Below, piece after piece: positions 24,946 to 40,972 of a DNA stretch of 64,000 nucleotides. The DNA lies in sequence record OQ708376.1. One strand, written 5' to 3'. The position numbers and the translations under genes were made by a program. The stretch's first letter is position 1. Each line of letters starts with the position of its first letter. Below the pieces are notes generated by a model. That model saw only the letters and a program-made list of their open reading frames with translations. It searched no databases and had not been told where the DNA came from.

Positions 24946-27726
24946 ATGCGTGAGTTTTTTGAATCTAATATAATGCTTGGTATTACACTGATATACATGT
25001 TTGTATTCTTGTTTTATCATTCAATTGTAATTAGTCTTTGGTATTTTAAAAGGAAAGTTGTTTTTAAATTGTATTCGTATGATAATGTATTCTTAGTTGT
25101 ATATAGCATTATACAAGGTGGGTTTATTTTATTTGGTGTGATGACATATGTGATTTACATGTTACAAATTGATAATACACCACACATTACACAATATGTT
25201 GTGTTTTCAGGACTAATCGTCTGGTTATTGGTGTGTACTATGTATTTTATTATTAAAGCTCGTGATAACTTTAAATGGGGATTCTAATGTTAGAATTTTT
25301 TAAATCAGATACAATGATTAGTATTACTTTGATTTATCTGTTTGGTTTTTTCTTTTATCATGCACTAGTTGTAGTACTATGGTATTTTAAAAAGAAAATT
25401 GTTTTTAAACTGTATCCAGTGAGGAATTCATCACTAGTTCTTTACACACTTGTTCAAGGTTTGTTTGCAATTGTTGGTCTTATGGCACACTTAATTTATT
25501 GTGCTAATCCTCACTTGAACTCAATCTCACAATATATTGTATTCTTTGGGTTGTTCATTTGGTTAGTTGCATACTTAATCCATCTCATTATTCATGGTAG
25601 AGATAAAATTCGCGGAGACTTCTAATGTTTGAAGCTTATCTTGAGTTTTTAAGGAGTAGTCCAGTTGCACATTCACTTGCAGGGATTATTCTAACAACTT
25701 ATGTATCATTTTGGTTAGTTATGTTTCTAGGATGGTATTTTAAACGACAATTCTATAAACGTAATGGTGAAGATTTTATGAATTCTGCCATTAATCAATC
25801 GTTGTTTGCATCAACATTGATTGCATGTATTGTAGCAACACTCACAGGAAAGGTACTACCAGCTTTTTCCGCAGTTTACGGCACACTTGGGATGATATGT
25901 TTAACTTTTATATTGACCATTAAAATTTGTTGTGTTATGATTGAACTTCGAAATAAGATACCGGAGGAATGATGGAGTACTTTATTGATTTACTGCCGTG
26001 GTATATGAAAGTTAGTACTTTGTACTATATTATTAGTGCTGGGTTCTACTTTCTGATGTGGTTCTTCAAACGACCAATTTCAGTATTCATCTCTGATAAC
26101 ATGCTGCAATTAAAATTACACGCATGGTTTGGTATGGCGATGATTATGCCAATTATTCACTACTCAATGATTAGTAGAGGTTTCCGTTCTAATGGTGAAC
26201 CAATTGTATTAGTATTCTATTGGGGTTCAACTATTGCATATGTAAGTTTGTTGTTGTTCCCAGTCGTTCATAAGTTACGTGCTAAAGTTCCTGATGCGAG
26301 GTACTAATGGATATAGTAACATTGATTTACACGTTGTATTCATTCTATTTCATTATGTGTTGGGTTGGATTTTTATTTGTACTCAAGATGTTTGATTATG
26401 TTGAAAAACAGATAAAAGAATTTTGTATTCCTTTTATCGGTTCAACCATTATTAGTGTTTCTTGTGTGTATTTTTTGGTTTTTGATCCACCAGATAACAC
26501 TGCAATGATTGACTTGATGTTACTACCAACAACTGTTACTTTTTTATGTAGTCTGATGCCGCCGATTAGCCGTGGACTAACAGAATTTAGACGCAATCAA
26601 AAGCGTAAACGAGGGATGTAATGGAAATTGCTCTTATTATCTTAACTGCTATGCTGTTTATTAGTACTGTGGTTATAATTGGTAAATTCTTTTGTGTATC
26701 ATTTTTAGAAACGGTATACGATGAAATTGCTGATGATTATGAATTACAAGCCGGATTTTTCATTACGTATTGGCTTAGTTTATTTTGTCTAGTCATTGCT
26801 TGGATTTTACATATCTTTAAATGGGGTATGGTAGACGGTGATCCTATTATGGCAATTATTGTTCTAGTGTTTGGTATCCTTGGTGGTGCAGTGCATAATC
26901 TAATGGTTATCTGGCAAACTGTTCAATATGTTTTGGTTCCCTATTTCGAAAAGATGCACAGTACAATTAAAAAACGTAAACGAGGTTAGTATGAACGGGA
27001 TAGAATTATCTTTCGTTGGTCAATTACTAGTAATGGCGTATACATTTATCTTCTCACTGAATGCATTCGTGTGCATTGGGAAGTACTTCCATAAGCGACC
27101 ATTATCAAATATATATGATGTAATCCAAAAGAGATATAGTCCAGCATATACTGTGTTGGGTACAGTATTCAATTTTGGTTTTATTGTATTAATAATTGGA
27201 CTGTTCACATCCTCTTTGAATACAATAACCTTTGGTCTTATGATATGTTCATTGGTATTAGCCGTAATTATATGTTGTTTAGTACTGCACCTTGTGGTAC
27301 TATTGTATATAAAGATCTCTGAAATCCACCAACGTTTGGGTATGAGGAAATAATATGAGTTACCGTGAGATATTTTCCATTATTTCAATTATTATGTTCA
27401 GTACTGGAACACTGGTATGGTTATTATACTTCTTCTGTATTAATCCAGTGTATAATATGTTATGTAATATTAAATCAAGTGCCGGATATATCACTTTTAT
27501 GGTCTTTATGGGATATTATTGTCTAAGCATTTTAGGTGTTGTTTTGGTTGTTATATTTGATGTGGGACCAAATAGTGATGGTATGGAAATACATGAATTA
27601 ATAACCATGTTTGGATGTATGATACCAACAGCACTACTGTTTGTAGCTACTGGTAGTGGATTGATAAAATTATATAATTATTTAAAATCCATTCATAATT
27701 CCATTCATAATAAGCGTATGTCATAA
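24946..27726 (+). CDS. eight tandem paralogous ~105-125-aa membrane proteins (24946..25287, 25287..25625, 25625..25972, 25969..26307, 26307..26621, 26621..26989, 26991..27353, 27355..27726)
   Basis: Three hydrophobic helices, W/K-Y-F-K motif after helix 1, basic C-terminus; stop/start coupling. Confidence 0.75.
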
Positions 27727-27767: not shown

Positions 27768-28430
27768 ATGATGAAATCAAAATTAGGTTTGTTTTATAAA
27801 AATTATTTTGTTAAACAACGTAAATTTATAAAAAAATATTTCTCTGGAGAGAAGTCTAGTCCTATAATCTTTAAAAGACCAAGTTATAATACTTACTTAG
27901 CTGGTGCTAAACAGTCTAAGAAATTTATTACTCTTTTACATAAAAACAACATTAAAGCTTCTTATGTTGAAACGAGAAGAAACTCATCAATAACTCCGGG
28001 TGATTTTATTGAGTACGGATGTTTCAATATTAAGTACAATGATAATACATACTTTATGGATATTGATTGTAATACATCCAATCTTTTTAACATTGTAGTA
28101 AATCCATTAAAACAATATAATGTTTATGGTGATTCTATTATCAAATTAATCAAAAACAAAGATGGCTTTGATTTTGAAATAAATGTTTTAGATGATAATT
28201 TTGACGAAGTACCCGTAAACCCTGAAATCTGTGATATTTTAAACAGTTTAAAAGGTAGTACCTACAATATATCATCTGATTTAATGTTTCAGTACTCATT
28301 AATCCATAAAGATATTGAAAAGTATATTGAATGCTCCAGAATTTTGAATTTTCTCTATGATGAATTTAAAAAGAGTTCTAAAATAACTGCATACACTTTG
28401 TACAATATTCCTAAAATGGTGAATCTTTGA
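27768..28430 (+). CDS. hypothetical protein, ExxFQxS family
   Basis: LNSLKGSTYNISSDLMFQYSLIH; AAGGAG RBS. Confidence 0.7.
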   Translation: MMKSKLGLFYKNYFVKQRKFIKKYFSGEKSSPIIFKRPSYNTYLAGAKQSKKFITLLHKNNIKASYVETRRNSSITPGDFIEYGCFNIKYNDNTYFMDIDCNTSNLFNIVVNPLKQYNVYGDSIIKLIKNKDGFDFEINVLDDNFDEVPVNPEICDILNSLKGSTYNISSDLMFQYSLIHKDIEKYIECSRILNFLYDEFKKSSKITAYTLYNIPKMVNL

Positions 28431-29563
28431 CAAATACAGTACTGGCAACTCCACCGTCTGTAATATTTTGTCCAGTACTGTAAATTTGTATACCATCGGT
28501 TAAGTAAGTTCTGTATAAAGTTGCTGTAACATATACGTTATTCATATTCATCTCTGTTGGTAGTACACATTTGGTATAGGCCGACACATCGGTTTGTGTA
28601 CCTATACCTAATTGTCCTGCGTTATCGCCTGTGTTATTACCAGTTGCGTAAACACCCAATGAAGTTATAATATGATTAGAAAAATATGAATAACCTACAC
28701 TGCTTCTTATTATATCGCCAGGTGCTTGTGTTGTTTGTCTTAACGAAATATATGTTTGTGATGTAGAACCATTTGCTAACTGACCAAAGTATTGACCACC
28801 ACCATGATATGCAAATAATTTATTAGTACTATTATTATTTGCTATAGCAAAAGCAAAGTAACTTGAGTTTGTTGTATAATCTTTTACTGTATAGGTATTA
28901 GTTATTTGAGAACATAACGTGTACTTTGAATATAACGTCATGTCGGTTGTACCTACGCCTGATATTGCACCAGTATAATACAATCTTCCATCGGTTCCAA
29001 TAAAACCTTGCATAAGAAAATTTGCCAATATTTTGGATGGTGTAACTCCAGTAGGTACTGTTCCTTGTACAAATGATGAAAGTGAATCAGTACTTCTACC
29101 ATTTCCTAGTTGACCATAACTACCATAGCCTGTATTCCATATAGTGTTGTCTGTGCATAATACGCTCAGTGCTCCTGCACTAACTACAATTTGTTTTATT
29201 GTTTTGCCTAGGGCTGTTATTCTATCAAACACTATCTTTGCAGAAGACCACGTTGTTGACTTATCAGTTGATAAACCGAATGATGCACCATTTCCAGCGT
29301 ACCACATCGTATTATCTTTCTTTTTTATTAAGGTTGACTCATACCCGCACCCATAGATCTTCTACGTTTGTATTGCATAAAACCCATTTCGTTTGTGTTA
29401 TAATATTACCTATACCCATTTGCCCAAACTCTTGAGAGCCTCTACTGTACAACGTACCATCTGACATAAGGGCAAAAACTGTCGTATCAGATGAAGCTAT
29501 TTTTGTAACAGAAGGTTGTATGTTCTTTTTTGATGATGTGATAATTCTTCCAAAGGGTAGCAT
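28411..29563 (-). pseudogene. RCC1/BLIP-II-like propeller paralog 1, +1 frameshift
   Basis: MLPFGRI start at 29563; removing one C at 29350..29352 gives LWCGYESTLIKKKDNTMWY in frame with 28411..29307. Confidence 0.75.
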
Positions 29564-29634
29564 TGTATCCTCCAAATGTAAATCGTTATTATATTTAGGA
29601 CAAAAAAATGCCAGTACAAAATACTGGCTTTATT

Positions 29635-30840
29635 TTATATACCACGACTGGGTATTTTATATAATTGAAATTTAGTGTAATAATCAGAAACTGTTGTACC
29701 TGTCGCTTGTGGGATATAGCCACTCAAATACACATCCCCTTGATTATCCATATACACATTTGTACATTCACTTGGACAGAATAACTCGATGCTGCCAACT
29801 TTAGGTGCATCAACTGGAACTACAAATGTAGTACTTGATGTGGTATTACCGCGACCGAGCCTACCATATGTGTTTATACCACACATATAAAGTGAATTGT
29901 TAGTTTTAACCGTAAGCCCACCATATGTTAATGAATTTGATTTCATTTCCATATTATCTGATATTGGTAGAGTGGAGATTGTAGATAATACTGTCCCTGA
30001 TGAAGCGGCTGAACCATTACCCAAGTTACCTTCCGATTGAATCCCACTTGCACGAACTGTATATGTATTATTCGTGTTGTGTTTAGATACAACCCATGAT
30101 GCACTCCCACCAAGTTCATAATGTATAACAGTATTGTTGGCTAATGCACCCATTTGTGTCCATACTTTAACGTTAGTTTCACCATTACTTATACCAAGTG
30201 AACCCCATGTGTTTTGACCAGTGACCCAAAGTGTTTTATCAATTTTCTGCACAATCACTGCACTTGAACCTGTTTTTACACTATCCACATTCGTATTAAT
30301 TGAAGTAAATGTTGATAATCTTGTGGTTGTGTTATTACCAAAATATCCCTGTGTATTGGCCCCCATTCCATATAGCGTACCATTTTGAAGTAAAACAAAA
30401 ATACCCTCCCCTACAATTTGAATGTCCTTAATTTGCGACAATTGTGTTGCATTGAATACTGATGTAAAATATGAAGTACAATCAGTATAAGTACTGACAG
30501 TACTTAATCCTGTACCAATAGCTCTACCTACGCCACTGTAATAAAATTTATTATCTTCGGTTTGGATTAAATTAAAAGAACCTTGGGCTGTTCTAAAACG
30601 TTTTACATTTTGGTATATTAAAGCCCACTCTTTTACTTTCGCATTAGGTACACCATTTCCGAATCCATAGTTTTGTGAACTAGTTCCACCTATACCCATT
30701 AAGTCTCCATTTTTATATAATAGTAAGAGTGCTGTTGCTGGAATAACTGACGCACTATAACCATTGTAAATAAAGATTTCTTTCACTTCAGGAACTTTCA
30801 TTTTATTTGCGTATTTTATCATCCTTGGAAAAGGTAACAT
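29635..30840 (-). CDS. RCC1/BLIP-II-like propeller paralog 2
   Basis: MLPFPRMIKYAN; G.N..G.LG repeats; 401 aa. Confidence 0.85.
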   Translation of the reverse strand: MLPFPRMIKYANKMKVPEVKEIFIYNGYSASVIPATALLLLYKNGDLMGIGGTSSQNYGFGNGVPNAKVKEWALIYQNVKRFRTAQGSFNLIQTEDNKFYYSGVGRAIGTGLSTVSTYTDCTSYFTSVFNATQLSQIKDIQIVGEGIFVLLQNGTLYGMGANTQGYFGNNTTTRLSTFTSINTNVDSVKTGSSAVIVQKIDKTLWVTGQNTWGSLGISNGETNVKVWTQMGALANNTVIHYELGGSASWVVSKHNTNNTYTVRASGIQSEGNLGNGSAASSGTVLSTISTLPISDNMEMKSNSLTYGGLTVKTNNSLYMCGINTYGRLGRGNTTSSTTFVVPVDAPKVGSIELFCPSECTNVYMDNQGDVYLSGYIPQATGTTVSDYYTKFQLYKIPSRGI

Positions 30841-30915
30841 AAATCCCTCCTTTATTCATTATACTATATTTAATCAAAAAGAAAAGCCAGCACTCTGTAC
30901 TGGCATTTAAAATAA

Positions 30916-32091
30916 TCAAATTGTAGGAAGTAGGAATTCTTTCATAACAGATGAACTGCTTGCAGATACATTATCTGGTGATTTCCCTGCGTAGTATAAT
31001 TTATTATTAATGAACATATACAATGTTGCATCATTTCCTGCAACTAGTGATTCACTTTTCTTAAATTGAACACCACTAGGTAAAATTGCTTCAACAAATG
31101 AACCTGATTCTCTTGTAGTATTATTTGCCAATTGACCATTGTTATTATAACCAGTACTATAAATTTTACCTGAACTATAATATACGAGTCCACGAGTACT
31201 AGTGTTTTCTATTCGAATGAATTCACTATCATCTGGAACTGTAGTTGATAGTACTGGGTTTAACTTATAAGCAGATGTTACATTATTATTACCCAATTGA
31301 CCATAACCTTGAAAGCCTAGAGTGTACATTGGACATGATTCTGGTGTACCTTTTGTTATAATACCAATATAATTCGAACTACAAAAAATATCTATTGCTT
31401 CTGTAATAGGTGTACCCTTATATTGAACCCAAGGGAATACATACGTTTGTTGCTTACTATTTCCCAAAGTACCGGAAGTTGTTGTTCCTGTACGCCACAT
31501 TGTATCATCAAGTTTAATTATCCAGTTAGCTGGCGTTATCGATGAACAGAATTTTTTAACATTATCCACTAAAAATGTAAATTTATTATAATATGATGCA
31601 GTGTTTATTCCAAACTTAGCACCAGTATTATCACCTAACAAATATAAACTATTATCTGTATCTAAAATCAAAGCATAATCATAACCCACGTATATCTCTT
31701 TAATTTTTGAAATACCAAATTGTGCGAAATAGCTTGTACATTCAGTGAATGTTGTCACTGTATTTGTTGTGTTATTACCTAGCCATTTATCTAAACCACT
31801 ATAAAAGAATCTATCATCATTTGTGCGTATTAGACAAAAAGAGTTCATTGTACTGCACCAAAAATCTTTAACATTGCTGTATATTTGTGTCCATTCAGTT
31901 ACTTGATTAGTATGACCTAAACCAAAAATTCCACCATTCTGAAGACCAATAGCCCATATTGAACCATTTTTGTCAAGCATCATCGTGCATGTATATGAAT
32001 AACCACATGACGGGGTAACTAATTTAACAAAATTGGGAATATATGGTAAAACTTTATTTCCATAATCCAACATTCTTACAAAAGGTAACAT
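30916..32091 (-). CDS. RCC1/BLIP-II-like propeller paralog 3
   Basis: MLPFVRMLDYGN; GYNNNGQL repeats; 391 aa. Confidence 0.85.
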   Translation of the reverse strand: MLPFVRMLDYGNKVLPYIPNFVKLVTPSCGYSYTCTMMLDKNGSIWAIGLQNGGIFGLGHTNQVTEWTQIYSNVKDFWCSTMNSFCLIRTNDDRFFYSGLDKWLGNNTTNTVTTFTECTSYFAQFGISKIKEIYVGYDYALILDTDNSLYLLGDNTGAKFGINTASYYNKFTFLVDNVKKFCSSITPANWIIKLDDTMWRTGTTTSGTLGNSKQQTYVFPWVQYKGTPITEAIDIFCSSNYIGIITKGTPESCPMYTLGFQGYGQLGNNNVTSAYKLNPVLSTTVPDDSEFIRIENTSTRGLVYYSSGKIYSTGYNNNGQLANNTTRESGSFVEAILPSGVQFKKSESLVAGNDATLYMFINNKLYYAGKSPDNVSASSSSVMKEFLLPTI

Positions 32092-32162
32092 AAATTCCTC
32101 CTTTATTCATTATACTATATTTAATACAAATAAGAAAGCCAGTACAGAGTACTGGCATAATG

Positions 32163-33314
32163 TCAATAAGCATCCCAAGGTAATGGTGTCTTTCTAAACC
32201 CATACCTAGTTGCGTTCTGCCCATCTCCGGCAATGTATCTACCGGTCCCACACTGATATAATTCAGTACTGCTACATATCGCACCACCAATAGTACCACT
32301 ACACCACTGTGTTATATTAGAATATAATATTGGTAAATCACTACATTTGGTATATACTGCAACCGTGGCAGTCCCGCTCGGACCACCAAACACACTTCGG
32401 TTCGAACCCGTGTAATATATGCCATCTGGACTCATAAATGCAGATGTATAAGTTGTACTGCAATCCACTGGACTTCTTATATTATTAAGATCGCTTGGGT
32501 ATGCTCTAGCACCATATGTGTATACATTACCAGCAGTAGTAATACCATTACCTAACTGACCATCATTTTGTCCACCACATGTAACCAACGATGCAGTACC
32601 GGAAACAATTGCAGTAGCATTATACGAAGTACCTATAGCAATAGAAGCACCCGCCCTTTGGGATGGGGTAGGAACTGCGGCTGCGTTCCCCTGACCTAAT
32701 TCACCATTGACATTTCTTCCCCATCCATATACCGAGGTGGTATCTAATTGACATAGTACTGTACCATAACTAAACGTATATCGTATATCTTTCACAGCCG
32801 ATGGTAAACCACTAACTTTAGTTGCAACACTAATAACTCCAGAAACGCCAGTAACTCCAGCGTTTGCGTTCATATTACGTCCATATGCGTATAAAGAACC
32901 ATCAGCAGTTTTAATATGCATCATGCCATCTGTGCAATATAATGCATCGATGCTATCCACTACAACCGCTCCCATACTAGACGTTATATCGTTCCACCCA
33001 AACGTTGTAGTATTAGAAATTAAGTTATTTCCAGCGTAAAGTATTCTATTATTATTTGTAACTACAACTGTATAATTGGCAGTAACGCCAATTAATCTAA
33101 CATTCTCATATATCTTAGACCACATTCCTATTGAATTTGTGTTAGCATCCAGAAATCCCAACTGACCAGCGGTATTATATCCAATACCCCACACATCACC
33201 TGCACTGTCCAATAACACTTCATGGGAAAAACCAATCTTAAAATCTTTTATCGTTGGTGTTACAGGAACAGGTTTAATATTCCCGTACTGAATCATTCTT
33301 GCAAAAGGTAACAT
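32163..33314 (-). CDS. RCC1/BLIP-II-like propeller paralog 4
   Basis: True start MLPFARMIQYGN after GGAGG; GWGRNVNGELG repeat. Confidence 0.85.
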   Translation of the reverse strand: MLPFARMIQYGNIKPVPVTPTIKDFKIGFSHEVLLDSAGDVWGIGYNTAGQLGFLDANTNSIGMWSKIYENVRLIGVTANYTVVVTNNNRILYAGNNLISNTTTFGWNDITSSMGAVVVDSIDALYCTDGMMHIKTADGSLYAYGRNMNANAGVTGVSGVISVATKVSGLPSAVKDIRYTFSYGTVLCQLDTTSVYGWGRNVNGELGQGNAAAVPTPSQRAGASIAIGTSYNATAIVSGTASLVTCGGQNDGQLGNGITTAGNVYTYGARAYPSDLNNIRSPVDCSTTYTSAFMSPDGIYYTGSNRSVFGGPSGTATVAVYTKCSDLPILYSNITQWCSGTIGGAICSSTELYQCGTGRYIAGDGQNATRYGFRKTPLPWDAY

Positions 33315-33385
33315 AATTCCCTCCTTATTCATTATACTATATTTAATACAAATAAGAAAGCCAGTACAGAGTACTGGCATTGTGT

Positions 33386-34565
33386 TTATCTAAAAGGAAT
33401 GCACTTTTTGAATTTATATATATATCCAGTCTCACCTTGTTCAGTAAAATACCCAGGGTTTCCAGTCCAGTATAAATCCTCACCTATACTAACTACCGAT
33501 ACTGAACCATTACCAATCGTACCAAACCACTCAACATATGATAAGTCAACACTATCATCAAAGAATTCTATTGGTAATATTGAACCATAATTCCCAGAGA
33601 ATGCGTTGCGGCCTAATCCAGCACCATTAGAATTATATCCCTTACCATTCGTATTAATAATGTTAGTACTGGATTTTATTGCATTAACATAGGATACTGG
33701 TGAAAGTTTATCGAATGAATTTGCTGTTATATCGGTATAGGGATTTGTAGTAAATGATGACCTTATTATAGCAGTATTTTCAGAACCACCTATAGTCAAC
33801 TGTGTGTTCCAACCAGCCGCCATTAAAGACAAAGCAGATGTACTACTTTGAACAATCAAACGTGTTACCCATCGTGTAGCTTGTACTGCAATTACATGAG
33901 AACTACCAAGATTCAATGCAGTAAAAGTAGTAATAGGATTATTATCACCGGTTCCTAATTGATAAAAAGTATTCTCACCACAACGATAATATATACCATC
34001 TTTTATATAGTGAAAGTTTCTGCTCATTTCACTAGATGCAATTGCAGATACACTAGTGTCTATTAAGAGTGGAGATGTAATTGGTGTAGTTGCTGTACCC
34101 AATTCACTTGCACCATTCATGCCTATACCATATAACTGACCGTCACTTGTTAGTATTAACATGGAATTGTTAGTACTGGTTGATGATGTTATTTTTATAT
34201 CTTTTATTGAACTCGGAGAAATAGATCCAAAATATGATTCACAACGAGTCCATGTTGAAACAGAAGATGATATACCAAAAACTGAGTTAGTTCCACTATA
34301 GTACAATTCCCCTTGTTTTGTTCTAATTATAGTACAATATAAAGAACTCCAGAAATCATCAACACTATAAGGACATAAAACCCATCTATCTAAAAAAGAT
34401 GAACCAGTAACTCCCATTTTTGATAATTGGTTTCCGTCCACGCATATATAATGACCCATCACTGTATAATACGCTTATTGAATTTTCATCACTATTAATT
34501 TTAACAACAGTATCTTTGCCAGGGGCAATATTCCCATAATTCATCATTCTTCCAAAAGGTAACAT
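33386..34565 (-). pseudogene. RCC1/BLIP-II-like propeller paralog 5, +1 frameshift
   Basis: MLPFGRMMNYGN at 34565; removing one T at 34431..34433 gives LYMRGRNQLSKMG in frame with 33386..34462. Confidence 0.75.
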
Positions 34566-34639
34566 AATTCCCTCCTTTATTCATTATAATATATTTAATA
34601 CAAAAAAGAAAAGCCAGTACTGAAGTACTGGCGAAATTA

Positions 34640-35830
34640 TTACAATTGTCTAGGTGTATCCAGAACATATCTAGTTGTACTAGGACCACCATCATCATAA
34701 GTTCCGGTTGAATATATATTTTTCATATCAGCAGTTAGAAAAGTACGATACGAACCGCGATATATTTTTATTTTATCATACATAGAATATGTTATTTGTG
34801 TAGGCATTGGACATGCAGTAAACTTACCAACAGTTGCACTAGTACCAATACCCAATGAACCAGCATAACTACTGGCATTTAAACCAGTTGCATATACACC
34901 AGTACTCGTAACTAGTATACTAGATTGTGTTGGGTATCCTGTATGAATTGAATACAAAGTTCCAGTTGGTAATGTCGTACTATTGCTCCCTAATACAGCA
35001 AGTGCCGAACTGGTTGTGGTATTGTTACCCCATGCACCATTACTCGCTAAACCACCAACTAGAAACTGACGTGCACCAGAACTTGGATTCTCAACCAAAG
35101 CACTGACTGCACCACTTGAGCATCCAGTGTATTGTAACGTTTTTGTGTATGTTGTACTTGGTTTATATAAAGTATATTCATTAAATGGTGTCCATGTGGT
35201 ACTGGTACTTATACCTGACGTACCACCACCAATATATAAATTATTTTGTGTATCAAAAAACATTACACAGTTATTTGTTGACTGTATTTGTGCAATATCA
35301 ACATTAGGCGTGACAGCTTTTACAAATGATCCATCTGTTATTTGTTGAGTACTACCAGTACCATCAGCGAATTGTCTAGCCCCACTCCAACCAGTACTCC
35401 ATATTGTATTATTATCCATTAATACCGTAAACCACGTAGTACCTCCATACATCTGTTTAATTGAAGTACTTGAACTTTGCGTGTACAAATTTTCAATATA
35501 TTGGTTATAACTTAAAAACGTAGTAGTACTAGTTGGTAAACCAAGATGATCACCATATCCACAATAAAAATAATTTGAGTCATTATCTTTTACTAATAAA
35601 GTTCCTTGTGTAAGCCAGCAATCGTTAACGTTTTCTCTAATTAATGTCCATGATTTTAATGCAGTGTTGTTTCCTCTACCGAATTTCCCAAAACTATTAT
35701 TCCCACGTGCATATAGTTGACCATCCGTATACAGAACCACAACATCTAAATCAGTTGGGATTATTTTCTTAATTTGAAGTGGTACTGGGACAATATTCCC
35801 ATAATTCATCATTCTTGCAAAAGGTAACAT
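34640..35830 (-). CDS. RCC1/BLIP-II-like propeller paralog 6
   Basis: MLPFARMMNYGN; 396 aa. Confidence 0.85.
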   Translation of the reverse strand: MLPFARMMNYGNIVPVPLQIKKIIPTDLDVVVLYTDGQLYARGNNSFGKFGRGNNTALKSWTLIRENVNDCWLTQGTLLVKDNDSNYFYCGYGDHLGLPTSTTTFLSYNQYIENLYTQSSSTSIKQMYGGTTWFTVLMDNNTIWSTGWSGARQFADGTGSTQQITDGSFVKAVTPNVDIAQIQSTNNCVMFFDTQNNLYIGGGTSGISTSTTWTPFNEYTLYKPSTTYTKTLQYTGCSSGAVSALVENPSSGARQFLVGGLASNGAWGNNTTTSSALAVLGSNSTTLPTGTLYSIHTGYPTQSSILVTSTGVYATGLNASSYAGSLGIGTSATVGKFTACPMPTQITYSMYDKIKIYRGSYRTFLTADMKNIYSTGTYDDGGPSTTRYVLDTPRQL

Positions 35831-35901
35831 ATTTCCCTCCTTTATTCATTATACTATATTTAATACAAATAAGAAAGCCAGTACAGTGTACTGGCATTAT
35901 A

Positions 35902-37041
35902 TTATTTCCACGGTAGAAGTGAATCAGGAACCCTTGTTGGTACAGTAGTTGAAGACATTCCAGTAAGATTGGGTACACCACATGTGTATAAATTATTATA
36001 TTCGTCAACTAACATCGTATAAGAATAGCTCTTACAAAAACTACTAAGATTACTACCTTCTAATGCAGTAAGATCCATTTCAGCGAATGATGTTATATAC
36101 ATATCAGTTGTACCAATACCACATTGACCATTTGAATTAAGGCCACATGAAAATAACTTATTATTATTATTAATTATACAGGATGGTCCGGTAAGGTTTG
36201 TCCCAAGCTCACCCACCAACTCCACTTCTCCTTGGAATGATAAATTTGGAATTAATGTACTCATTGGGGCTACTGACCTATTTCCTGTACCTGCTTGTCC
36301 ATAGTCGTTAATAGATGCAACTTTAACATTACCATCATTAAGAAATATATAAGAAGTTTCATTTGTATTGACTGCTTTAATTGCATTACTAATCGAAGTA
36401 TCTTGTGTAAATGTGAGCAAGTTTTGTGTCGTCGTTCCTGATACAAACGTTCTACCTGCATACCAATATGAACCATCATTTAGTACTAATCCAGTACTAT
36501 ATATTGCACAACCAGCACTGATAACATTTTCTATTGTACTATAGGTGAATCGTGAAACGCTTGAAGTTGATCCATTCCCAAAAACACCACCAGTACCAGC
36601 ACCACAGTAGAACCACTTTCCATTTTTTAAAAATACACGCATACACGAAGATATCACAACACTATCAATATCATCTGCACTGACACCGAAATCAGTAAAG
36701 TTCTGTGTTATATCAACCCAAACGCCGTTAGTGTTTGAAGATAGTATTGGAATAACAGTACGTCTACCAGTGTACCAAATAGTACCATCTTTCTTTATAG
36801 CAATTGTTCCTTGTACCCCACCCCAATATCGTGTAACATTTGAGTTGACAAGAGTCCATTCAGTTGAAGAGTCCAATGAACCATTACCACTTTGTCCATA
36901 TGCTGAAGAACCAAACCAATATAGATTACCATTTGTGTGTAAATAAAATTTGGCATCAGCAGAACATTGTAACCTGTTTTTAGGTAGAATCAGTTCAGGT
37001 GCGATATTCCCGTACTTAACCATTCTTGCAAAAGGTAACAT
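35902..37041 (-). CDS. RCC1/BLIP-II-like propeller paralog 7
   Basis: True start MLPFARMVKYGN; CGLNSNGQCGIG repeat. Confidence 0.85.
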   Translation of the reverse strand: MLPFARMVKYGNIAPELILPKNRLQCSADAKFYLHTNGNLYWFGSSAYGQSGNGSLDSSTEWTLVNSNVTRYWGGVQGTIAIKKDGTIWYTGRRTVIPILSSNTNGVWVDITQNFTDFGVSADDIDSVVISSCMRVFLKNGKWFYCGAGTGGVFGNGSTSSVSRFTYSTIENVISAGCAIYSTGLVLNDGSYWYAGRTFVSGTTTQNLLTFTQDTSISNAIKAVNTNETSYIFLNDGNVKVASINDYGQAGTGNRSVAPMSTLIPNLSFQGEVELVGELGTNLTGPSCIINNNNKLFSCGLNSNGQCGIGTTDMYITSFAEMDLTALEGSNLSSFCKSYSYTMLVDEYNNLYTCGVPNLTGMSSTTVPTRVPDSLLPWK

Positions 37042-37111
37042 ATTCCCTCCTTTATTTGTTATACTATATTTAATACAAATAAGAAAGCCAGTACAGAGTA
37101 CTGGCATTATG

Positions 37112-38221
37112 TTATTTTGGTAAATCAATTTTAGTAAAGACTGCAACATCCTCGATTGCACCTGGAATGGCGTAATACGATCCAGTACTATACACATCTC
37201 CATTTTTGGTTAATATCGATGTCAAACCATCACTAAAAAGAACATCCCTAATCTCACTAACTTCAACGGGTAATTGTAAATTGGTAGCACTATATATAGC
37301 ACCAGTTTGAGAATTGTTTAATCCCAAACCACGGTTCGCCCCAACACCCTTCTGATATGTACTAGTAATTACCATTTGTGTAGCAGTATTTAAGGCAGGT
37401 GAATTCGTCATAAACAACGGAGAACTATTAGGCAAAGTACTTAAAGGAACTGCACGGAATGTAGTCGTACCTGAACTAAGAAAGTTTGGAGTTTGACCAC
37501 ATACGAAATATGATGTACCATTATAGTAATTTAATGCATTACCACCAATGGCTGCATCGATTACACCAGAACTACGCAATCCCCAAGTGTTAATTTGTGT
37601 TTGGTTCCCCGTACCATGCTGCCCACTACTATTCCATCCAGAACTATATAGCTTATTATCTAATGTAAGATACATACTATCATTCGCATTGGTCATTACT
37701 TTACGAACGTTCGTAGCACATTGAGTTAATGTGTAAATTGATGATGAACCAATACCCAAAGAACCACGATATCCATTATCTCCTGCACCATAGAGTACTG
37801 AATTAGTGCTAAGTACAAATATTAAACCATTTGTGCATACAATATTAGCAATTTCACTGACTGGTATAGCATTGGTAAACCAACTAGTCCTTTCAACTAA
37901 TACAGTACTGTAAGAAGTAGTTGTAGAAGATGAGAACCAGTACGTTTGACCTGATGTCCATATAGTATTATCATTTTTAATAATAACAAGTGTACGATCA
38001 CCCACGAAAAAATTAGAAACATCTGCACTTACTAATGTCCACGAAGACACCGTGTTGGTATTACCATTTCCAGATTCACCACCTTGATTTCTACCTATGT
38101 AATATAAATCATGTGAATCAGTCAATAAGAATTGACCTTGTGTAGAAGCACCAACTTTAATTATTTTTTTAGGACCAGGGACAATATTTCCATACCTAAT
38201 TATTCTTCCAAAAGGTAACAT
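37112..38221 (-). CDS. RCC1/BLIP-II-like propeller paralog 8
   Basis: True start MLPFGRIIRYGN; SGWNSSGQHG repeat. Confidence 0.85.
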   Translation of the reverse strand: MLPFGRIIRYGNIVPGPKKIIKVGASTQGQFLLTDSHDLYYIGRNQGGESGNGNTNTVSSWTLVSADVSNFFVGDRTLVIIKNDNTIWTSGQTYWFSSSTTTSYSTVLVERTSWFTNAIPVSEIANIVCTNGLIFVLSTNSVLYGAGDNGYRGSLGIGSSSIYTLTQCATNVRKVMTNANDSMYLTLDNKLYSSGWNSSGQHGTGNQTQINTWGLRSSGVIDAAIGGNALNYYNGTSYFVCGQTPNFLSSGTTTFRAVPLSTLPNSSPLFMTNSPALNTATQMVITSTYQKGVGANRGLGLNNSQTGAIYSATNLQLPVEVSEIRDVLFSDGLTSILTKNGDVYSTGSYYAIPGAIEDVAVFTKIDLPK

Positions 38222-38229
38222 ATTCCCTC

Positions 38230-39432
38230 CTATTGTTGCCATAACTGCGTTGGCATTAATGTTAGTGTAGTAATACTATAAGTGCCATCTGGCAATCTAC
38301 CACCATTTCCATTCCAGCCACCACATGCATATAATTTATAATCTTTAGTAATTATTATGGTTCTGCTCCAATCTTTAGATGCCATAAGAACATTTTCATA
38401 ACCACCACTTATTGCACTAAGATTAAAAATATTCCAAGTTCTAACTAATGTATTAGTTCCATTACCTTCTTGACCATATGAGTTAGCACCACTACTTCTA
38501 ACATATGGTGCGTATTGTGCCATAGGTGCACCAATTGATGCATTTCCCATATTACTTGGACAAATAAAAGTACTGTACTTACTTACATCAACCGTGACCG
38601 ATGTGTTCCTAATTGGTGTTAGCTGATTTACCGATGTAGTCGTACCATTACCCGCTTGTCCAGTACTGTTAGCCCCGCTATAATATACAGACCCACCAGT
38701 AGTAAACCACCAAGTAACATCGTATGTAGTACTAATATGTTCTACATTACTAATCACGAATTTGTTCAAATATACAACAGAACTACCACCACATCCACTT
38801 TCACCAAAGTTATCCTTACCACAAAACCATGCATCTTTATTTGATTTGATATAGTGCGTTCCTTGTAATGAACATGCCATATGTGTAACTTCACCCATAT
38901 TAGTCATAACTGTGAGTGTAGGGATGGAATTTTTATTACCAGAGCCACATTCACCATTGGTATTTCTTCCACACGCAATTACTCTACCATCGGTTAATAA
39001 TATTCTAGTACTTTCACCTATATATACACTCTTGATCATATTAGCCATAACACCTATTTTATTAAATGCAACAGTAACATCAGTCCATGTTGTCAAATAA
39101 CCATTAACAGGTGTTGCATCTCCATAATCAGAAAATGCAGCCACAGACCCAGTGTAGTATATTTTATTATCCAAATCAATCATCAACGAACCTTGAACAC
39201 CAAGCCAAAAGGCTGCACAGTTCCTTGCAAGTACTGTAAATGACGAAACTGCTGCTGAATTCCCAAGACCAAATTGATACATGTTATTACTACCATAACC
39301 ATATAAAGTATTAGTTGGGTTATGTAGATACATACAGTTTGTATAATGTTGTTGTAAAACATCTGAGAACTCTACAGGTTCTGGACCTGGTGCAATATTT
39401 GCGTACTTAACCATTCTTCCAAAAGGTAACAT
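38230..39432 (-). CDS. RCC1/BLIP-II-like propeller paralog 9
   Basis: MLPFGRMVKYAN; CGRNTNGECG repeat; 400 aa. Confidence 0.85.
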   Translation of the reverse strand: MLPFGRMVKYANIAPGPEPVEFSDVLQQHYTNCMYLHNPTNTLYGYGSNNMYQFGLGNSAAVSSFTVLARNCAAFWLGVQGSLMIDLDNKIYYTGSVAAFSDYGDATPVNGYLTTWTDVTVAFNKIGVMANMIKSVYIGESTRILLTDGRVIACGRNTNGECGSGNKNSIPTLTVMTNMGEVTHMACSLQGTHYIKSNKDAWFCGKDNFGESGCGGSSVVYLNKFVISNVEHISTTYDVTWWFTTGGSVYYSGANSTGQAGNGTTTSVNQLTPIRNTSVTVDVSKYSTFICPSNMGNASIGAPMAQYAPYVRSSGANSYGQEGNGTNTLVRTWNIFNLSAISGGYENVLMASKDWSRTIIITKDYKLYACGGWNGNGGRLPDGTYSITTLTLMPTQLWQQ

Positions 39433-39480
39433 ATTTCCCTCCTTATTAATTATATCATATTTACCCCATAAAGAAAACCC

Positions 39481-39509
39481 TTGACATCCTTTCAGTACTG
39501 GTGTACTAT
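39481..39509 (+). promoter_or_regulatory. promoter of the small-gene array, divergent from the propeller array
   Basis: TTGACA-N17-TACTAT, AGTACT in the spacer. Confidence 0.7.
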
Positions 39510-39534
39510 AGAAGGAATATAAGGAGAACTACAC

Positions 39535-40972
39535 ATGACAAATACTCTTAAGTACTACCTCAATACTCTAAATGAACTAGAGTACGGGGAATTTCTCGCG
39601 GATAGTTCGTGGCTAATTGAGCTAAAAAATTATAATAGTCCAGGATGCACCCTTATGATGAACAATGCAATTGATACCCTCATTGTGAGTATTTTACACA
39701 GCAACATCTGCGGGGATAGCAATAAACAATTATCAAAAATCTTAGTACTGCTATCTATATGAACATTGAACAGTACTACATCGATGCACTACCAACAAAA
39801 GGTCTACGAGAAAGCCTACTGTATACACAAAATACTTTTATACACTACAAACGTTGTCCTAAACTCCTGAACTCGTACAGGAGTAATATCATAAGAAATG
39901 CTTTACAAGGGGCAGAAAGTATGCAATACTATTATATCCTTGCCCTTTTAATCGAGTACTAATATGAATACTGAACATAAAGAATTCTACACCAAATACC
40001 TTAGCAACGAAGAACAATTGTTTCTAAGGAGTGTATCACCTTTAAGTATAGATACACCACACGCCAGAGATTGCTTTAATAATTGTATACGTAGTACTAT
40101 AGAAGCAATCGAATGTAATAACAAAAATATTATGTACTCAGGTTTAATAGGACTAATATATTTCTATGAATAATCATAAAGATTTCTATTGTAGTAAACT
40201 ACCCAAACAAGAACAGCTATCATTCTCTTTAGCACCACCTATGAGAAAGGATAATCTGTATTATAATTACGATTTCAGGATGGTGACACGTTATGCAATA
40301 GAACATACGTTCCCTGCAACTAAGTACCGCTCTATCCTGAACCTCATCTTTAAGTTCTAAAAGGTACACCAGGGACCGAGTACTTTAACATAGTAAGGCT
40401 AATTACAATGAATCATATAAGCTACTACTACCAACAACTATCCGACAGAGACAAGTACAGTCACAACTCCCATGTGTGGTACTACAAACGCGGCAGTATA
40501 AGAGACAAACAACATTACTTCTGTATTTCTATTAAAGAAGCACTGACAACTAAGTACACGTACCGAGCAGTACTGAAACTTATTGAAATGTAAGGAAGAA
40601 AATGAACATAGAATTCTATTTAACTAAACTACAACACGCCGAAAGATTCAACTTCAATAAGTTCAATATTTTCTACAATTGCGGGAACAAAAAAGATAAA
40701 CACACCTTCCTATATGTCGTCACAAGAGATGCACAAAACGAAAAGTACACATACAGAGAAGTAATGAAACTAATCGCTATTTAAGGAATACTATGCAACA
40801 ATTCTATAGAGAACGTATAACCATAAAAGACCGTTTCATGTACGACACCTTCGTGAAGTACTACAAACTAGGAACAAAAAGTACTAAAAATATTAATCTC
40901 AATAGCTGCATTTATGCTGTACTAACACAAGATAATCCCTACAGGGAAATCCTCGCCCTGGCATCTATATAA
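39535..40972 (+). CDS. seven tandem ~60-75-aa paralogs (39535..39762, 39759..39962, 39964..40173, 40166..40360, 40408..40593, 40602..40784, 40793..40972)
   Basis: N-terminal (K/E)(F/Y)Y...L and C-terminal Y..(I/L)L.LI. Confidence 0.75.

Follow-up and report, generated by a model that had tools for sequence, protein, structure and literature searches.

The final 64 kb of the genome of Escherichia phage vB_EcoM_CRJP21 (OQ708376.1, 366,301 bp) was analysed and is referred to here as the window. This E. coli phage is a jumbo myophage of the Rak2-like kind and belongs to Asteriusvirus. On the minus strand of the window, at 28411-39432 (330712-341733 in the record), the open reading frame (ORF) listing contained nine head-to-tail genes for RCC1-like propeller proteins, here named g1-g9. 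These proteins share a 12-residue N-terminal peptide, referred to as the tag. The tag is probably (with a likelihood of about 0.6) a lineage-specific virion-incorporation or docking peptide on the interchangeable binding heads of accessory virion proteins, which are likely exposed. This reading is carried by the selection of the tag as a peptide, by its occurrence in front of unrelated bodies in other phages and by the detection of tagged proteins in published virion proteomes.

Array of Tagged Genes in CRJP21

Six-frame translation of the whole window gave exactly nine occurrences of the motif MLPF.R, each at the start of an array gene. The nine genes reported at this position in the initial annotation were confirmed by the ORFs and by these nine starts. 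Nine proteins of approximately 370-400 amino acids (aa) had been described. This is correct for the seven intact genes (g2, g3, g4, g6, g7, g8, and g9; 369-401 aa) but not for g1 and g5, which are frameshifted. Both consist of two pieces in different reading frames, for which a single frameshift per gene is enough as an explanation, and both are annotated as two coding sequences apiece in the GenBank record. The shared N-terminal start is present in all nine genes as MLPF.R, but g1 retains no more than residues 1-7 of the tag. The count of tagged genes for CRJP21 covers the 64-kb window, the remaining 302 kb of the genome being outside it.

The Tag on Unrelated Bodies in Other Phages

The tag was back-translated into a degenerate DNA pattern, with which IMG/VR and metagenomes were scanned. 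In IMG/VR matches were found in five jumbo-phage contigs of about 350 kb only, including 121Q, Serratia phage BF, and CBB. The whole contig of 121Q was scanned and its matches lay in its array only; CBB had one match outside the array, CBB_247. The metagenome scan gave 26 loci of which about 20 were genuine, with a complete ORF behind a ribosome-binding site. Asteriusvirus, Mimasvirus, Eneladusvirus, Salmonella phage Munch, and uncultured relatives together yielded at least 87 different tagged proteins, which fall into about 11 BLAST clusters. This number is a minimum because the degenerate pattern would miss the flavour of the tag in Munch (CPT_Munch_536-545, locus L043), which has Ile for Leu at position 2. 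Flavours of the tag vary at position 2 (L or I) and at position 6 (R/K, I, or Q). One member of the Munch array is annotated with a GTG start.

The tag is modular, as had been proposed, with the same peptide present on RCC1 or Kelch propellers, Laminin_G_3 lectin-like domains, glycine-rich proteins, and other folds. Ten tagged genes are encoded by CBB (CBB_247, 536, 537, and 548-554) and their bodies are Laminin_G_3, Kelch, or of no assigned fold. Tagged glycine-rich proteins are present in 121Q, phAPEC6, and Serratia phage BF. Xanthomonas phage XbC2 has eleven tagged genes in succession, and entire mixed-fold arrays bearing flavours of the same peptide were found in Serratia phage BF, XbC2, and Munch. 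In two proteins an RCC1 propeller is fused to a second body behind one tag.

The fused proteins are 667 aa (locus L004, 6413-8416, minus strand) and 688 aa (XbC2_591; locus L042, 359-2425, plus strand) in length, and in the former an RCC1-like half is visibly joined to a Kelch-like half. The 349-kb metagenome contig Ga0308166_1000037 (locus L036, 5557, minus strand) has one ORF in which the tag occurs twice, at a distance of about 40 residues, as if the remnant of a cassette had become fused to the following gene.

Bodies of the CBB_553 family are also present in phages outside the Rak2-like group, for example 4MG (Seunavirus, 148 kb), a member of the Vequintavirinae. The 4MG homologue (4MG_167; locus L041, 3450-4100, plus strand) matches from about residue 22 and has a different N-terminus without the tag. 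The body moves between lineages, and the tag belongs to the Rak2-like platform.

Selection of the Tag as a Peptide

Among the seven intact paralogs, identity to the first is 20-28%. Their pairwise identity is 0.73 in alignment columns 1-12 compared to 0.22 elsewhere, in agreement with the earlier description of a conserved start on very divergent bodies. Seven of the 12 columns of the tag are invariant, compared to 10 of 434 outside it (Fisher P = 2e-8).

Residues were counted over the 87 distinct tagged proteins, positions 1-4 being fixed by the search pattern. Position 6 is R in 68 and I in 18 proteins, and position 7 is M in 54, I in 22, and L in 10. Y is found at position 10 in 77 and N at position 12 in 76, with G (66) or A (10) between them at position 11. 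The Pro-containing linker described behind the tag was also found, with Pro at position 15 in 42/87 proteins and at position 17 in 30/87.

The conserved residues are encoded by different synonymous codons: CCT (22) and CCA (21) for P3, TAC (24) and TAT (13) for Y10, GGA (12), GGG (18), and GGT (2) for G11, and AGA (28), AGG (2), and CGT (1) for R6. The DNA upstream of the tag is conserved within Asteriusvirus only, whereas the tag residues are conserved across genera. Conservation of nucleotides alone, without synonymous variation, had been named as an observation that would speak against the tag; it was rejected on the codon changes and on the upstream DNA. Since the conserved residues vary synonymously while the upstream DNA is unconserved between genera, the constraint acts on the protein. 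The tag is selected as a peptide.

A DNA- or RNA-level effect was considered, in which gene conversion at the 5' junction, or else a site of translational control over the start codon, accounts for the conservation and the peptide has no role. Within Asteriusvirus the junction and the first 36 coding bases are almost invariant in nucleotides, and recombination breakpoints are located there, both of which fit such an effect. It does not account for residues that are kept between genera and change synonymously. In CBB, XbC2, and Munch, moreover, the tagged genes are packed with roughly 10-nt spacers, without the junction cassette of Asteriusvirus, and the peptide is kept. The DNA- or RNA-level explanation is largely refuted and is regarded as very improbable.

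Tagged Proteins in Virions

Virion association had been suggested for the array proteins, and it is borne out by the published mass spectrometry (MS) of phAPEC6, CBB, GAP32, and JP4 virions, which includes orthologues of g2, g4, and g7. In phAPEC6 virions gp003, 005, 006, 007, 009, 010, 549, and 551 were detected by electrospray ionisation tandem MS (ESI-MS/MS), and all eight start with the tag. The product of g4 is 96% identical to the detected gp005. That of g7 is 65% identical to gp551/gp001, of which gp551 was detected. In CBB virions MS detected CBB_247, 536, 537, 548, 549, 551, 552, and 553, and five of the six MS-detected CBB structural proteins without a GAP32 homologue are tagged. GAP32 gp001, a structural protein by MS, is also tagged. 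The liquid chromatography-tandem MS (LC-MS/MS) table of JP4 virions lists JP4_577, 581, and 582. JP4_577 has the length of g2 and is identical to it over the roughly 110 residues compared, and JP4_582 is a close homologue of g4. The CBB and JP4 virion tables are at protein level, without peptide lists. The published proteomes speak to presence in the particle, on whichever side of the capsid.

Tagged proteins were enriched among the detected proteins of both phages for which this was calculated. In CBB 8/10 tagged proteins were detected compared to 55/554 overall (P = 2e-7), and in phAPEC6 8/11 compared to 62/551 (P = 2e-6).

The tag may be functional as a peptide without being an incorporation signal. 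It could be recognized by a chaperone or a modifying enzyme, act as an oligomer hub or be a stability signal, and it would be the bodies that decide on presence in the virion. A tag which lies outside the fold and is under protein-level constraint is consistent with such a role. The capsid appendages of phAPEC6 have been described as triskelion-shaped in negative stain, and, speculatively, a peptide hub with three heads could give this shape. Under this explanation, however, unrelated bodies would each need their own route into the virion, yet most of the tagged proteins of CBB and phAPEC6 were detected there. The untagged body family in unrelated lineages is also more in keeping with an adaptor specific to the platform than with an aid to folding. 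A role of this kind is considered quite unlikely.

Predicted Fold of the Array Proteins

All nine array proteins or pieces match Pfam RCC1-type models. PF00415 or PF13540 scored above the gathering cut-off in 8/9 of them; g6 matched PF25390 only, with a sub-threshold match to RCC1_2. PF25390 matches all nine with E values of 1e-9 to 1e-23, yet below its own 150-bit cut-off. The AlphaFold2 (AF2) model of g9 had a predicted local distance difference test score (pLDDT) of 89 and a predicted template modelling score (pTM) of 0.88, with an all-beta propeller over residues from about 26 to 392. Residues 1-15 lacked secondary structure, with a pLDDT of <50. In the g4 model (AF2, pLDDT 77.6) residues 1-10 had a mean of 54 and the first strand began at residue 22. 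Foldseek aligned the g9 model to UVR8, the HERC2 RLD, and RCC1 at template modelling (TM) scores of 0.7-0.8 and E values of 1e-16 to 1e-24, the TM scores for UVR8 and RCC1 being about 0.75-0.8.

The array proteins are predicted seven-bladed RCC1-like propellers; the initial claim of this fold holds on the Pfam matches in all nine and on the two AF2 models. In the models the tag is outside the propeller and looks like a free peptide on a Pro-containing spacer. A tag acting as the closing ("velcro") strand of the propeller was considered and rejected because it is placed outside the fold in the models of both g9 and g4.

The array proteins resemble the RCC1 family (RCC1, UVR8, and the HERC RLDs) in their Pfam RCC1, RCC1_2, and WD40_RLD matches and in the predicted seven-bladed propeller. 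The N-terminal tag has no counterpart in RCC1, UVR8, HERC, or BLIP-II, and nothing here points to Ran, chromatin, or beta-lactamase as targets. The BLIP-II or inhibitor idea of the initial annotation is a resemblance only, and the 50 best structural matches listed for g9 did not include BLIP-II.

Database searches with the fold were of little help with the tag. A word-indexed protein search with g9 gave 12 relatives only, with no window paralog among them. The exhaustive profile search gave 102,354 representative proteins with RCC1-like repeats at E <= 0.001. It was dominated by giant multi-repeat RCC1 proteins, with three phage-sized full-length matches in the best 150, and was uninformative about the tag. 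PHROGs provided names only, for example "regulator of chromosome condensation" or "virion structural protein."

Names of this kind suggest that the proteins condense DNA or chromosomes and act on DNA of the phage or the host. Many records use the name "regulator of chromosome condensation" or else "DNA condensation protein," and the RCC1 fold was confirmed. The name, however, was transferred from the eukaryotic founder of the fold, and RCC1-like repeats are ubiquitous, as the profile search showed. The proteins are not basic, and the same locus and tag also carry Kelch, lectin-like, and glycine-rich bodies. Condensation is considered extremely unlikely.

Proposed Docking and Location of the Tagged Proteins

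Each product is proposed to be built of the 12-residue N-terminal peptide, a short Pro-containing spacer, and a seven-bladed RCC1-like propeller. The tag would form no part of the fold and would bring the domain behind it into the particle by binding a shared site. The propellers would be exchangeable binding heads, whose equivalents in sister phages would be the Kelch, Laminin-G-like, and glycine-rich bodies. These heads are most likely on the exterior of the particle, for example in the hair-like appendages of capsid and tail, and their ligands would be structures of the host surface.

An exposed location is favoured on several grounds. The tagged proteins have a median isoelectric point of 7.5 with about 6% basic and 6% acidic residues, and about 40% of their residues are S, T, G, or N; this near-neutral, charge-poor composition suits an exposed location, as does the absence of a conserved T4-type cleavage motif. 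Elsewhere these folds occur at the ends of fibres and on the surface of virions. RCC1-like propellers end annotated tail-fibre proteins of other phages (BFVD matches in PollyC and Littlefix), and Laminin G3 domains have been reported on jumbo-phage tail fibres and virion components. Hair-like head and tail appendages have been described for 121Q, phAPEC6, and CBB, and these hairy phages have large tag repertoires. Literature searches on the start of the tag in phages and on the N-termini of Asteriusvirus virion proteins gave no published description of the tag. In print the genes are treated solely as RCC1-like or "DNA condensation" paralogs.

A number of points weigh against docking by the tag and against an exterior location. 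The proteomes gave 1-8 unique peptides per tagged protein, which is low, and 2-3 tagged proteins per phage were undetected. The link of the tag to incorporation is a correlation between tag and virion detection. Low AF2 confidence over a 12-residue chain end is no proof of disorder, and in the g4 model residues 4-13 are drawn as a weak helix. Oligomerisation, recognition by a chaperone, or turnover could be the purpose of the tag instead. An inner body is present in phAPEC6, for which its authors proposed RCC1-like proteins as candidates, and this together with the T4 precedent keeps alive a location inside the head.

In that alternative the tag would be a capsid-targeting sequence (CTS) of the T4 kind which binds the scaffolding core. 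The proteins would lie inside the head, in the inner body or for ejection, and would be delivered with the DNA as variable tight-binding inhibitors of host defence proteins. About ten N-terminal residues of the T4 CTS suffice for the incorporation of diverse internal proteins (PMC9026906, PMC3012670), an architecture which is alike, and T4-type head genes are present in Rak2-like phages. The array is also hypervariable among close relatives, as an arms race would predict. The likeness is one of architecture as described in papers. The T4 prohead-protease site is L/I-X-E (PMC9026906). A [LIM]-x-E motif at positions 7-9 was found in 0/7 intact window genes and 10/87 tagged proteins, and any [LI]-x-E within the first 30 residues in 16/87. 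Near-neutral, charge-poor proteins are not the basic proteins that embed in DNA, and rigid propellers of 25-45 kDa and lectin-like jelly rolls are folds otherwise found on fibres and virion surfaces. A T4-like capsid-targeting role is possible but unlikely. By analogy the tag might, more doubtfully, be a portable packaging address by which the head is loaded with strain-variable propeller and lectin binders. These would be injected with the DNA against host defence proteins, as a counter-defence repertoire diversified by cassette exchange.

Junction Cassettes and Annotation

Alignment of the nine 5' regions showed the same ~70-nt cassette at 7/8 gene boundaries (Table 1). It opens with an 8-bp GC-rich hairpin and a T-run, continues with a promoter-like block that is AT-rich and conserved, and ends with a Shine-Dalgarno sequence and the start codon. 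The g9/g8 boundary is 8 nt in length and has the Shine-Dalgarno sequence alone, without a terminator or promoter cassette. The terminator scan predicted 16 sites compared to 5.0 ± 1.9 expected. Seven of the 16 were the cassette hairpin on the minus strand, one behind each of g2-g8. The sigma-70 scan (40 sites compared to 59.9 expected) did not single out the conserved junction block, and the promoter nature of the block thus rests on its position and conservation.

Table 1. Array genes, junctions, and leader in the window of CRJP21, in descending order of position.
Feature	Position	Strand	Description
Leader ahead of the first array gene	39433..39600	-	Promoter-like block and Shine-Dalgarno; ~94-95% identical to 121Q and phAPEC6
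g9	38230..39432	-	Intact, 400 aa; tag coded 39397-39432; Pfam WD40_RLD, RCC1, RCC1_2; AF2 propeller
g8	37112..38221	-	Intact, 369 aa; tag coded 38186-38221; Pfam RCC1-type
Junction g8/g7	37042..37111	-	Hairpin 37087-37105; AT-rich promoter-like block; Shine-Dalgarno
g7	35902..37041	-	Intact, 379 aa; tag coded 37006-37041; Pfam RCC1-type
Junction g7/g6	35831..35901	-	Hairpin 35877-35895
g6	34640..35830	-	Intact, 396 aa; tag coded 35795-35830; Pfam RCC1-type
Junction g6/g5	34566..34639	-	Hairpin 34613-34632
g5	33386..34565	-	One frameshift; tag coded 34530-34565; Pfam RCC1-type match on C-terminal piece
Junction g5/g4	33315..33385	-	Hairpin 33360-33378
g4	32163..33314	-	Intact, 383 aa; tag coded 33279-33314; Pfam RCC1-type; AF2 propeller
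Junction g4/g3	32092..32162	-	Hairpin 32138-32156
g3	30916..32091	-	Intact, 391 aa; tag coded 32056-32091; Pfam RCC1-type
Junction g3/g2	30841..30915	-	Hairpin 30886-30904
g2	29635..30840	-	Intact, 401 aa; tag coded 30805-30840; Pfam RCC1-type
Junction g2/g1	29564..29634	-	Hairpin 29610-29628; more diverged
g1	28411..29563	-	One frameshift; 7-residue tag remnant coded within 29528-29563; Pfam match on C-terminal piece

ORFs of 405 aa (32163-33380) and 433 aa (35902-37203) were rejected as giving the true N-termini of g4 and g7, the upstream non-coding junction being read through in frame. Because the cassette translates in frame, spurious long ORFs arise, as do the N-terminal extensions on phAPEC6 gp002 and JP4_581. 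Such extensions are of 22-54 residues and are annotated as coding in some records (phAPEC6 gp002, locus L013, 3506-4810; JP4_581). At about 7325 (plus strand) of the same phAPEC6 locus there is a complete tagged glycine-rich ORF of 244 aa, which is apparently unannotated. The phAPEC6 record has instead the 100-aa gp004 near this position, the translation of which looks different.

Cassette Exchange and Array Evolution

The array was compared to 37 related genomes. Coverage of >80% was obtained by CRJP21 itself only, the others covering 6-68% in 1-8 pieces. Long homology blocks shared with 121Q, phAPEC6, and metagenomic arrays have a boundary, at their beginning or end, either in a junction or 20-48 nt within a tag-coding region, and 261/261 short matches were on junctions. 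Among the array genes, g6 has ~96% DNA identity with 121Q, g8 has 97% with a phAPEC6 block, and g9 is 75% identical to phAPEC6 gp002. Broken or truncated copies, as in g1 and g5, are common in other arrays as well. The array is a birth-and-death cassette mosaic. In this picture whole cassettes are swapped by recombination in the tag and the conserved junction with its terminator, promoter-like block, and ribosome-binding site.

Genes Flanking the Array

Eight small hydrophobic paralogs of about 104-125 aa, 17-50% identical to the first, adjoin the array on its upstream side (24946-27726, plus strand). Several of them and a neighbouring 257-aa gene are labelled "regulator of chromosome condensation" in GenBank. 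The 257-aa gene and the first small paralog were the two scanned with Pfam, and no RCC1 match was found in either. A similar block of small membrane proteins lies ahead of the tagged array of CBB. At 39535-40972 (plus strand) there are seven tandem small ORFs of 59-75 aa which are weakly related to each other. Common to them are a Tyr close to the N-terminus and a Leu-rich motif at the C-terminus, and no Pfam match was found for them. No homology was detectable between the array-flanking genes of CRJP21 and CBB, and among these genes there was no conserved neighbour as a partner candidate.

Relation to Known Systems

The internal proteins of T4 (IPI, IPII, and IPIII) are the first comparison. 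As with the array proteins, a short N-terminal peptide is the sole common part of polymorphic accessory virion proteins, and the phage lineages are related via T4-type head genes. The array tag differs from the T4 CTS in having no conserved L/I-X-E protease site. The T4 cargo is small and basic, whereas the tagged bodies are large, neutral, beta-rich binding folds.

Branched systems of receptor-binding proteins (RBPs) are the second. In K1E/K1-5/SP6 and in the Klebsiella phage groups KP32, KP34, Menlow, and PhiK64-1/RaK2, group-specific N-terminal docking peptides of down to 7-11 residues dock secondary RBPs to T4gp10-like domains of another virion protein (PMC6872550). RBP docking by a conserved peptide is reported to be experimentally validated (PMC13352976). 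N-terminal parts are used likewise for RBP docking in phiKp24 and RaK2 relatives. The likeness to the array is a group-specific short N-terminal peptide on divergent, exchangeable, virion-borne modules. The bodies of the branched systems, however, are trimeric beta-helix depolymerases or tailspikes, compared to propellers, lectin-like domains, and glycine-rich proteins of 170-690 aa here, and tagged phages have 9-14 tagged genes per genome. The docking partner in the branched systems is T4gp10-like, whereas the shared site of the array tag is putative.

The tail fibres of Pseudomonas phages PollyC and Littlefix (BFVD) also have an RCC1-like propeller as a distal module behind a platform-specific N-terminal attachment. 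Their attachment is a whole T7-tail-fibre-like domain in a protein of 867-1365 aa, rather than a peptide of 12 residues. The tag system was counted in neither the T4 CTS nor the branched RBP class because it differs from the former in protease site and cargo and from the latter in cargo fold and copy number.

If docking by the tag is correct, the "chromosome condensation" and "DNA condensation" genes of Rak2-like phages, of which there are dozens in each genome, would form one class of address-tagged, exchangeable virion accessory proteins. A 12-residue rule would then predict virion membership over at least five phage groups and would unite RCC1, Kelch, lectin-like, and glycine-rich proteins which have so far been handled separately. 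The array would be an obvious candidate for strain differences in adsorption and host interaction among near-identical jumbo phages, and it may account for the hair-like appendages. The T4 principle of one short N-terminal address for many cargoes would have been reused, with a different peptide, in giant relatives.

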